From the NCBI GenBank assembly GCA_002269645.1, contig NIVC01000690.1, forward strand, positions 62,001 through 126,000: 64,000 bases of DNA, written 5' to 3'. Position numbers and translations under genes: made by a program. Position 1 is the stretch's first letter. Every line of letters begins with the position of its first letter. Below the pieces are notes generated by a model that worked only from the letters and a program-made list of their open reading frames with translations, searched no databases and was not told where the DNA came from. The DNA comes from Macrostomum lignano. Taxonomy: Eukaryota. Positions 10,428 to 12,314 of this stretch are shown here, one piece after another.

Positions 10428-10457
10428 GTTTCTGCTGTCTTTTCTTCTGTACTGCAG
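10428..10457 (+). promoter_or_regulatory. Strong 3' splice acceptor with no evident upstream coding donor (candidate trans-splice site)
   Basis: gtttctgctgtcttttcttctgtactgcAG| sits directly before an in-frame, ATG-less coding exon. Confidence 0.65.
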
Positions 10458-12314
10458 AGCACTAAAATTCGAGCCGTTAGCCTCGCCGCAGGCGGCAGCT
10501 GGACTTGCTTCATCATCGCTACTAGGTGGAGCTTAACAACCCACGGTGTTGTAGCAACTCGATTCGGGCATCACCATCAGCAGAATCTGCTGCATCGCTG
10601 CTGGCTCAGCTCTGCCTCGCGTAGAAACCGGCCAAACTATCCTGCGCTGGATGAGTCCGCTATTCGTGAGCAGTTTGTGAGCGGCTCCGGCCCCGGCGGG
10701 CAGAAGATTAACAAGACTCAGAATAAGGTGAAATTCTATATTGTAGAGACTGTAGCCTGTGTAGACGTAGCTTTGATATCCAATTCTACAGACAGACAGA
10801 CAGACAGACAGACAAGACAGACGGACAGACAAGACAGATAGTCAGACAGACAGACAGACAGACAGACAGACAGACAGACAGACAGACAGACAGACAGACA
10901 GACAGACAGACAGACAGACAGACAAGACAGACGGACAGACAAGACAGATAGTCAGACAGACAGACAGACAGACAGACACTAAGACAGACACTAAGACAGA
11001 CAGACAGACAGACAGACAGACAGACAGACAGATAGACAGACAGTCAGACACAGACAGACAGACAGACAGACAGACAGACAGACAGACAGACAGACAGACA
11101 GACAGACAGACAGACAGATAGACAGACAGACGGACGGACGGACAGACAGACAGACAGACAGACAGACAGACAGACAGACAGACAGACGGACAGACAGGCA
11201 GACACTAAGACAGACAGACAGACAGACAGACAGACAGACAGATAGACAGACAGTCAGACACAGACAGACAGACACTAAGACAGACAGACAGACAGACAGA
11301 CAGACAGACAGACAGACAGACAGACAGATAGACAGACAGACAGACAGACAGACAGACAGACAGACAGACAGACAGACAGACGGACAGACAGGCAGACACT
11401 AAGACAGACAGACAGACAGACAGACAGACAGACAGACAGATAGACAGACAGTCAGACACAGACAGACAGACACTAAGACAGACAGACAGACAGACAGACA
11501 GACAGACAGACAGACAGACAGACAGACAGACAGACAGACAGACAGACAGATAGACAGACAGACAGACAGACAGACAGACGGACGGACAGACAGACAGATA
11601 TACAGACAGACAGACAGACAGACAGACAGACAGACAGACAGACAGACAGACAGACAGACAGACAGACAGACAGACGGACGGACAGACAGACAGACAGACA
11701 GACAGACAGACAGACGGACAGACAGACAGACAGACAGACAGACAGACAGACAGACAGGTAGATTCAGCATCATCGCGTGAACACGTTTCCCAGTGTAACC
11801 ATATCTCAATTCGGTGCTTCTCTTTGTTTAAGTCTATCTAATCTCGTTCCTCTCATCCATTCTCTTATCGACTTAACTATCATTATCTAACCTACGTAGT
11901 GACATCTATCCTCATTTCCTCTCATCTACTCTCTACTCATCCCTTCTCATCTACTCTCATCAATTCTCATATAATATGTTCTCTTCCCAGGTAGTCCTGA
12001 CCCACCTGCCCACGGGCACTGTGGTGCACTGCCAGGAAACCAGGTCCCTACACGAGAATCGTCAAATCGCCCGTCGCCGCCTTCAAGAGAAGCTGGACGT
12101 TCTCATCAACGGCGAACACGCCGCCTCGGTGGTGGCCGAACGAGAGCGTCGAGCTCGGGACCGCTACGAGCACGGCAGGAGCGTGTCCCGGCTGCAGATG
12201 AAACTGCGACTCAAAGAGGAGCTCGCAAATCGGCTGCCGCAGCGGCTGGAGACGCCTCCGAGCATGGACGAGGGTGGCGACGCTGATGGTAACAGCGGCT
12301 CTGATGGTCGATGA
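10458..12314 (+). CDS. MTRFR: Mitochondrial translation release factor in rescue (C12orf65 family); exons 10458-10727 and 11991-12314; no genomic ATG
   Basis: Spliced translation [27 protein letters not shown]|[36 protein letters not shown] carries the RF-1 GGQ motif (10695-10703) and the QETRSL..NR..AR..L..KLD pattern typical of C12orf65. Phase-0 GT 10728 / AG 11989-11990. The Arg/Ser-rich, acid-free N-terminus resembles a mitochondrial presequence. Confidence 0.9.
10788..11757. repeat. (GACA)n microsatellite filling most of the MTRFR intron
   Basis: Read directly from the sequence. Confidence 0.95.

Follow-up and report, generated by a model that had tools for sequence, protein, structure and literature searches.

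The genomic stretch analysed here (the window, 64,000 nt) is part of scaffold NIVC01000690.1 in the Mlig_3_7 assembly (GCA_002269645.1) of the flatworm Macrostomum lignano, where it starts near position 62,001, and carries, on its forward strand, a two-exon gene for the mitochondrial rescue factor MTRFR (C12orf65) that begins directly behind a splice acceptor and has no initiator ATG of its own. The start codon of this gene is, in our view, likely to be supplied by the ATG at the end of the trans-spliced leader (SL). M. lignano, a hidden polyploid, carries many copies that are redundant (PMC8629364; PMC10468722), and three copies of the gene were compared: that of the window, which over 470-22314 (21,845 nt) is 100% identical to the locus L003, and those of the loci L001 and L002. 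The features that define the gene, numbered from the first letter of the window, are these:

10419-10421, forward strand: in-frame TAA, 13 codons (39 nt) 5' of the exon, kept in L001, L002 and L003
10422-10457, forward strand: pyrimidine tract and 3' splice acceptor (…ttcttctgtaCTGCAG), the proposed SL trans-splice acceptor, from direct reading
10458-10727, forward strand: MTRFR exon 1, 270 nt or 90 codons, in phase 0 at its start and its end and free of in-frame ATGs
10698-10706, forward strand: GGQ catalytic motif (GGC GGG CAG), within GPGGQ at 10692-10706
10728-11990, forward strand: intron 1 (GTGAAA…CCCAG), with the acceptor ttctcttcccAG at 11990
11991-12314, forward strand: MTRFR exon 2, which encodes what remains of the RF-1 domain, followed by the region of the basic C-terminal helix and by an acidic tail; matches PAA78427.1 (P0122)

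Since the TAA at 10419 is in frame with exon 1, unspliced read-through from upstream is blocked. Behind it come a pyrimidine tract of 30 nt and the hexamer CTGCAG ending at 10457 (tactgCAG), and the interval as a whole (10422-10457) contains a single AG (10456-10457) and no ATG. Translation of exon 1 begins STKIRAV... and yields an N-terminus of about 59 codons free of acidic residues, followed by the start of the RF-1 domain; the lone forward-strand ATG within the exon, at 10651, is out of frame. The exon ends at a donor, AAG/GTGAAA, at the 10727/10728 boundary, and exon 2 completes the gene with a TGA at 12312-12314, giving a spliced coding sequence (CDS) of 197 sense codons, or 198 residues once the SL methionine is counted. 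Its first in-frame ATGs are codons 160 and 182, both past the catalytic domain; the methionine at codon 160 (QMKLRL) is common to all three copies, and codon 182 is an arginine codon in L002. By chance, the ~56 codons from the acceptor to the start of the homology to human MTRFR would be open with a probability of ~0.07, and the acceptor would lie in phase 0 in 1/3 of cases. The sequence-only reading that preceded this analysis had reported the in-frame stop at 10419, a strong acceptor ending at 10457 and a phase-0 exon with 90 codons without ATG ahead of the GGQ motif, all of which are read directly in the DNA; the range it gave for the exon, 10428-10727, needs trimming, since its first 30 nt are acceptor region and the exon proper runs from 10458, and exon 2 had no place in that reading. 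The bulk of intron 1 is an (ACAG)n microsatellite (10788-11757, ~970 bp), and tetranucleotide arrays resembling it recur at ~19.4-19.9 kb and 50.2-51.1 kb.

The spliced product carries a Pfam RF-1 domain (E=2.3e-22, residues 65-153). When all PDB sequences were searched, the best match was human C12orf65/MTRFR (7a5h_C, E=8.5e-27) and the second the mouse homologue (2rsm_A, E=4.6e-23); the next best was RF1 at 5e-11, RF1/RF2 being sixteen orders of magnitude weaker than C12orf65, and no ICT1 chain was among the 45 PDB matches. Residues 54-167 of the query (SL methionine counted) align with human residues 44-157 (~114 residues), the alignment reaching residue 157 of 166 and taking in the Arg/Lys-rich helix. 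Like human MTRFR (7a5h_C; mouse 2rsm), the predicted 198-residue protein is small and class-I release-factor-like; it has a GGQ domain and a basic helix near the C-terminus, is extended at the N-terminus to a similar length, and is without codon-recognition domains. Unlike human MTRFR, it is ~30 residues longer (an acidic C-terminal tail and some 10 more residues at the N-terminus) and its initiator is not genome-encoded. On these similarities we regard the assignment as an MTRFR/C12orf65 orthologue as sound, as the RF-1 domain and the two top PDB matches bear out what had been proposed from the letters alone. Because the N-terminus, with the SL methionine, exceeds the human one by only those ~10 residues, no further upstream coding exon is needed. 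Its first 65 residues contain no aspartate or glutamate (D/E), eight arginines or lysines, five histidines and many serines, threonines and alanines; the remainder of the protein is 15% D+E. The chance of 65 residues free of D/E is ~0.01 in random sequence and 2.5e-5 at the D+E frequency of the remaining protein. Judged by homology and composition, this N-terminus is plausibly a mitochondrial targeting signal.

To our knowledge, all reported flatworm SLs end in AUG. M. lignano has a single SL of 35 nt, CGGTCTCTTACTGCGAAGACTCAATTTATTGCATG, which ends ...TTGCATG and is followed in the SL RNA gene by a GTAAG donor directly 3' of the ATG, and its top trans-acceptor motif is [T/C]TNCAG at the junction (PMC8629364); the final ATG of the Macrostomum SL has been labelled a translation start codon (Wiberg et al., 2023, PMC10468722). 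The MTRFR acceptor, CTGCAG, fits this motif. Joined at the 10457/10458 boundary, SL and exon read ATG AGC ACT AAA, that is MSTKIRAV..., in frame and with no intervening stop, and the predicted mRNA junction is …UUGCAUG/AGCACUAAAAUUCGA (M S T K I R). The SL ATG is in frame with MTRFR because the acceptor is in phase 0, and the SL AUG is the first of the mRNA because the leader has no other AUG. Both an organism with an AUG-terminated SL and the MSTKIRAV start had been proposed by the sequence-only reading; the first holds in this flatworm, and the second is in frame with the 197-codon CDS. In letters, the predicted SL-exon junction is TTTATTGCATGAGCACTAAAATTCGAGCC, the unspliced form TACTGCAGAGCACTAAAATT, the exon 1 side AGCACTAAAATT, and a junction at the second AG, two bases further on, …GCATGCACTAAAATT. 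No match to the SL of at least 14 nt was found on either strand of the window, and the SL RNA gene is therefore located elsewhere.

An initiator might also be supplied by a cis-spliced upstream exon, either unannotated, in or beyond the satellite arrays that lie 5' of the gene, or joined through a chimeric transcript with the neighbouring gene TMEM50. Two features upstream of the acceptor matter here:

5451-5936, forward strand: TMEM50/UPF0220, a single-exon gene with its own ATG (Pfam UPF0220, 3.9e-42)
10159-10457, forward strand: 299 nt of unique sequence that separate the last satellite array from the acceptor, a putative outron, without ATG

On the 5' side of the acceptor (1-10457), we listed each ATG whose frame stays open up to a phase-0 GT. 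Between the end of TMEM50 and the acceptor (5937-10457), the forward strand holds only ten ATGs, the nearest to the acceptor at 9384, and only that at 9154 yields phase-0 candidates; their donors (GTTATA, GTTAAG and GTTTGA) are all non-consensus, none of the three fitting the GT[G/A]AG consensus of M. lignano (PMC8629364). Over the whole of 1-10457 a single candidate has a consensus donor (322-372, GTAAGA), which is what chance would give and which would have to skip two complete genes. The earlier claim that no upstream ATG has a compatible good donor is thus confirmed for the 8000-10450 for which it was made and extends to 5937-10457, with 322-372 as the one consensus-donor candidate further up: there is no usable genomic AUG able to start a functional MTRFR protein. 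Comparing the copies for a conserved upstream exon was uninformative, as they differ by only ~2-7%, too little to tell exon from non-exon. What speaks for a cis-spliced exon, besides the 322-372 candidate, is that the acceptor could serve both cis- and trans-splicing, flatworm acceptors being often shared (PMC12582326), and that an old model, P0005 (ML2), links TMEM50 to MTRFR. This model, however, comes from the indel-rich ML2 assembly, covers window 5496-5643 together with 10572-12288, changes frames and lacks the first ~57 exon 1 codons, and the newer, transcript-based annotation keeps TMEM50 and MTRFR separate in three of three copies, with no upstream exon. We hold a cis-spliced source of the AUG to be very unlikely.

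Existing gene models bear on the same point. Five public models, drawn from two independent annotations, have neither a methionine nor an upstream exon, and start between -9 and +12 nt of the acceptor:

P0001: starts at S1
P0123: starts at T2
P0002 and P0122: start at R5
P0003: starts three codons 5' of the acceptor

P0001 and P0003 are older ML2/UniProt models; the GenBank CDSs start at T2 (L002) or R5 (L001 and L003), 3 or 12 nt past the acceptor. The Mlig_3_7 transcriptome was built from end-to-end-mapped RNA-seq, with SL reads trimmed of the leader and open reading frames (ORFs) called by TransDecoder (PMC5730564). In such a pipeline, a cis-spliced 5' exon should have been joined by junction reads, and an SL-capped 5' end should give a transcript that begins at or just inside the acceptor and an ORF called 5' partial, a pattern that the models fit without proving it, as the +3 and +12 offsets reveal 5' ends that were not placed precisely on an SL peak. 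That standard ORF finders miss this exon had been noted, and all three GenBank copies are indeed labelled partial and lack a methionine:

Mlig022593g1 (window and L003): PAA78427.1 (P0122), 'hypothetical protein, partial' (BOX15_Mlig022593g1)
Mlig015902g1 (L001): PAA82159.1, 'hypothetical protein, partial'
Mlig023541g1 (L002): PAA77602.1, 'hypothetical protein, partial'

Other entries are composite or altered. P0005, tried as a paralogue with its own methionine and N-terminus, was rejected, tblastn showing TMEM50 in shifted frames fused to MTRFR; P0004 is a chimera of MTRFR and sequence antisense to the downstream EF-hand gene (15350-16177), with many frame switches. Exon 1 contains two consensus GTGAG donors just 5' of the GGQ codons (10666-10671 and 10677-10682), and P0001 matches an exon 1 that stops at 10665 and continues at 11991, with a frameshift and loss of GGQ; this form may reflect unproductive alternative splicing or an error of annotation. 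In the protein collection the full product, with or without methionine, has no exact match and the MSTKIRAV start was not found, which is uninformative. A 74-residue N-terminal query returned no candidates and an exon 1 query only P0001, the word index missing P0002, P0122 and P0003 although nearly all of the query is present in them; the word-indexed search finds these three with the full-length query only, and its short-query negatives are untrustworthy. The identifiers Mlig022593, Mlig015902 and Mlig023541 are absent from two supplementary files of PMC5816591.

We compared the three copies across acceptor and coding sequence. The 26-nt junction TACTGCAG/AGCACTAAAATTCGAGCC is identical in all three, and each has the upstream TAA and an intact CDS of 594 nt that neither stops nor indels interrupt. 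The catalytic core (residues 61-136) shows two synonymous and no amino-acid changes, the C-terminal tail varies, and none of the N-terminal substitutions makes an acidic residue. In the 300 nt 5' of the acceptor, 16 columns are variable, three of them indel columns, and the putative outron (10159-10457) is ~5% diverged with indels; the N-terminal coding part has 7 of 162 variable columns and no indel. Because the CDS is intact, the catalytic core unchanged and the outron marked by indels, the copies look functional and the ATG-less layout maintained, on a comparison of three copies too similar for conservation to be a strong test. These data also bear on the idea that the locus is an expressed but decaying duplicate, not productively translated, whose missing start is a defect. 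The many redundant copies of this hidden polyploid and the 'partial' label on all three would suit it, and the GTGAG donors in exon 1 (10666, 10677) could yield frameshifted products like P0001. Decay is nevertheless at odds with three intact CDSs of equal length, with a core (61-136) unchanged at the amino-acid level despite synonymous changes, and with a catalytic domain that still aligns with human MTRFR over its ~114 residues at E=8.5e-27; moreover, no other MTRFR-like protein with its own methionine turned up for M. lignano in the protein search. We judge it highly improbable.

We therefore favour an explanation in which the start codon is donated by the SL. The MTRFR pre-mRNA would come from a promoter just upstream or arise as a downstream cistron behind TMEM50, and under either origin trans-splicing would create its mature 5' end. 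The pre-mRNA would be spliced at the CTGCAG acceptor (10457) to the 35-nt leader, whose last three bases would become codon 1 (AUG/AGC ACU AAA AUU...). The product would be a 198-residue protein that opens with a basic N-terminus of ~65 residues free of acidic ones, probably a mitochondrial presequence, and continues with the peptidyl-tRNA hydrolase domain, which bears the GGQ motif, and a basic helix towards the C-terminus. Genome sequence, the three copies and the behaviour of the annotation together point to SL addition at 10457, and we infer initiation at the SL AUG of the MTRFR mRNA.

Some observations weigh against this explanation. A second AG follows at 10458-10459, two bases on, where SL addition would give SL-ATG CAC TAA, a dead frame; with T at -3 and A at +4, the SL AUG has a context that would count as weak in vertebrates; and since the GenBank CDSs start at +3 or +12 and not at the acceptor, the annotation pipeline may have missed an SL peak at MTRFR. 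Among the copies, the N-terminal substitutions are about neutral (5 nonsynonymous and 2 synonymous over 59 codons). Because the crude hydrophobic moment of the N-terminus is low (0.25-0.46), a presequence role is argued from composition only. The first two of these points are also what one would cite for an mRNA that starts at the acceptor and initiates at a near-cognate codon, or that receives the SL at the second AG and so opens with a 2-codon upstream ORF. In-frame near-cognates do exist in exon 1 (AUU at codon 4, AUC at 19-20, CUG at 44-45), and the annotated CDS of L002, beginning at +3, fits a transcript from the second AG. The second AG, however, has a G before it, which makes it a poor GAG-type site outside the [T/C]TNCAG motif. 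Splicing usually picks the AG that comes first behind a long pyrimidine tract. We take the second AG to be at most a minor, unproductive alternative. The SL AUG, moreover, is in frame, and it would be the first AUG of the mRNA and the sole one ahead of the catalytic domain; in schistosomes, initiation from the SL AUG works (PMC9851317). Near-cognate initiation or a start from the second AG thus appears quite unlikely, and SL-AUG initiation at 10457 remains the explanation that we favour.

In its neighbourhood, MTRFR lies 4-4.6 kb 3' of TMEM50 on the same strand in three of three copies, and TMEM50 is possibly the leading member of a transcription unit made up of these two genes. The 4.5-kb gap between them in the window is ~70% tandem satellite (6219-8013, 8485-9118 and 9440-10158). 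Without these three arrays it measures ~1.4 kb from the TMEM50 stop, or ~1.1 kb if the TMEM50 3' untranslated region ends near 6165, which is a guess; either value exceeds the repeat-adjusted operon cut-off of 1 kb (Ustyantsev and Berezikov, 2021, PMC8629364). The locus resembles M. lignano operons (PMC8629364; Wudarski et al., 2017, PMC5730564) in the SL used, in the acceptor motif and in having a conserved gene behind a same-strand neighbour with satellites between, and differs from those of PMC8629364 in its ~1.4-kb gap, above that cut-off.

Repeats and further genes surround this pair. A 23-bp satellite, CTCTAATCCACCCTGAGAATCGG, flanks MTRFR in the same orientation on both sides (6219-8013, 78 copies; 13215-14916, 74 copies), and likewise in L001. 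A 28-bp tandem array (…CAGTTGCTGGGCCAGCCTCCCAGATCCT…) at ~3300-5380 ends ~70 nt 5' of the TMEM50 ATG; it spans ~2-3 kb in the window and less than 0.7 kb in L001 (~4458-5153), a large copy-number gap between homeologues by the probable promoter. Downstream of MTRFR and convergent with it, a gene for a 940-residue protein with faint EF-hand Pfam matches occupies ~15.2-23.6 kb of the reverse strand. Exons of an AMP-binding (acyl-CoA synthetase-like) gene lie at 35151-35777 and 40273-40848 on the forward strand, and an ORF with an RNase H domain (Pfam 1.4e-11) at 43824-45367 on the reverse strand, next to an ORF without a Pfam match, is probably a retrotransposon fragment.

The mechanism proposed for MTRFR is already known, because SL-AUG initiation has been shown in schistosomes and the Macrostomum SL ATG has been noted as a start. 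In S. mansoni, as cited in PMC9851317, Cheng et al. (2006, J Biol Chem 281:733) found that the SL AUG can initiate, as the sequence-only reading had stated, that 28% of trans-spliced transcripts have it in frame, and that more than 40 cDNAs need it; PMC12582326 and PMC5832876 also summarize schistosome SL-AUG initiation. MTRFR shares with the flatworm 'slORFs' of PMC9851317 an SL ending in AUG, a recipient exon in phase 0 right after the acceptor and the lack of a genomic initiator. The work of Cheng et al. rested on S. mansoni cDNAs and reporter assays, whereas ours draws on M. lignano genome sequence, three copies and annotation; the recipient in our case is a mitochondrial rescue factor and the host a free-living basal flatworm. 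Neither PMC8629364 nor PMC5730564 gives a gene-by-gene analysis of the SL ATG as a start codon. What is new is MTRFR as a case, the probable dependence of all three homeologous copies and a deposited annotation that leaves such genes partial; the mechanism itself is not.

For annotation the case is useful, though it would not surprise a specialist. PAA78427.1, PAA82159.1, PAA77602.1 and a number of UniProt entries now hold truncated, frameshifted or chimeric versions of this protein and can be corrected to full-length MTRFR with its methionine supplied by the SL. Where a pipeline strips the entire SL together with its final ATG ahead of ORF calling, genes that depend on the SL AUG will come out as 5' partial, and putting that ATG back at mapped trans-splice sites before ORFs are called would fix the whole class. 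Because transgenesis works in M. lignano, the MTRFR locus is a testable system. More speculatively, because all three homeologous copies have stayed ATG-less, rescue-factor production might be gated by trans-splicing; that SL dependence is a maintained regulatory coupling of this kind, and MTRFR the tip of a sizeable ATG-less, '5' partial' class, seems to us unlikely. If it exists in M. lignano, such a class may be rich in genes with mitochondrial or other conserved housekeeping roles. For the flatworms at large, MTRFR would extend obligate SL-AUG initiation from parasitic species to an early-branching free-living one, which would fit an ancient role of the conserved terminal AUG.

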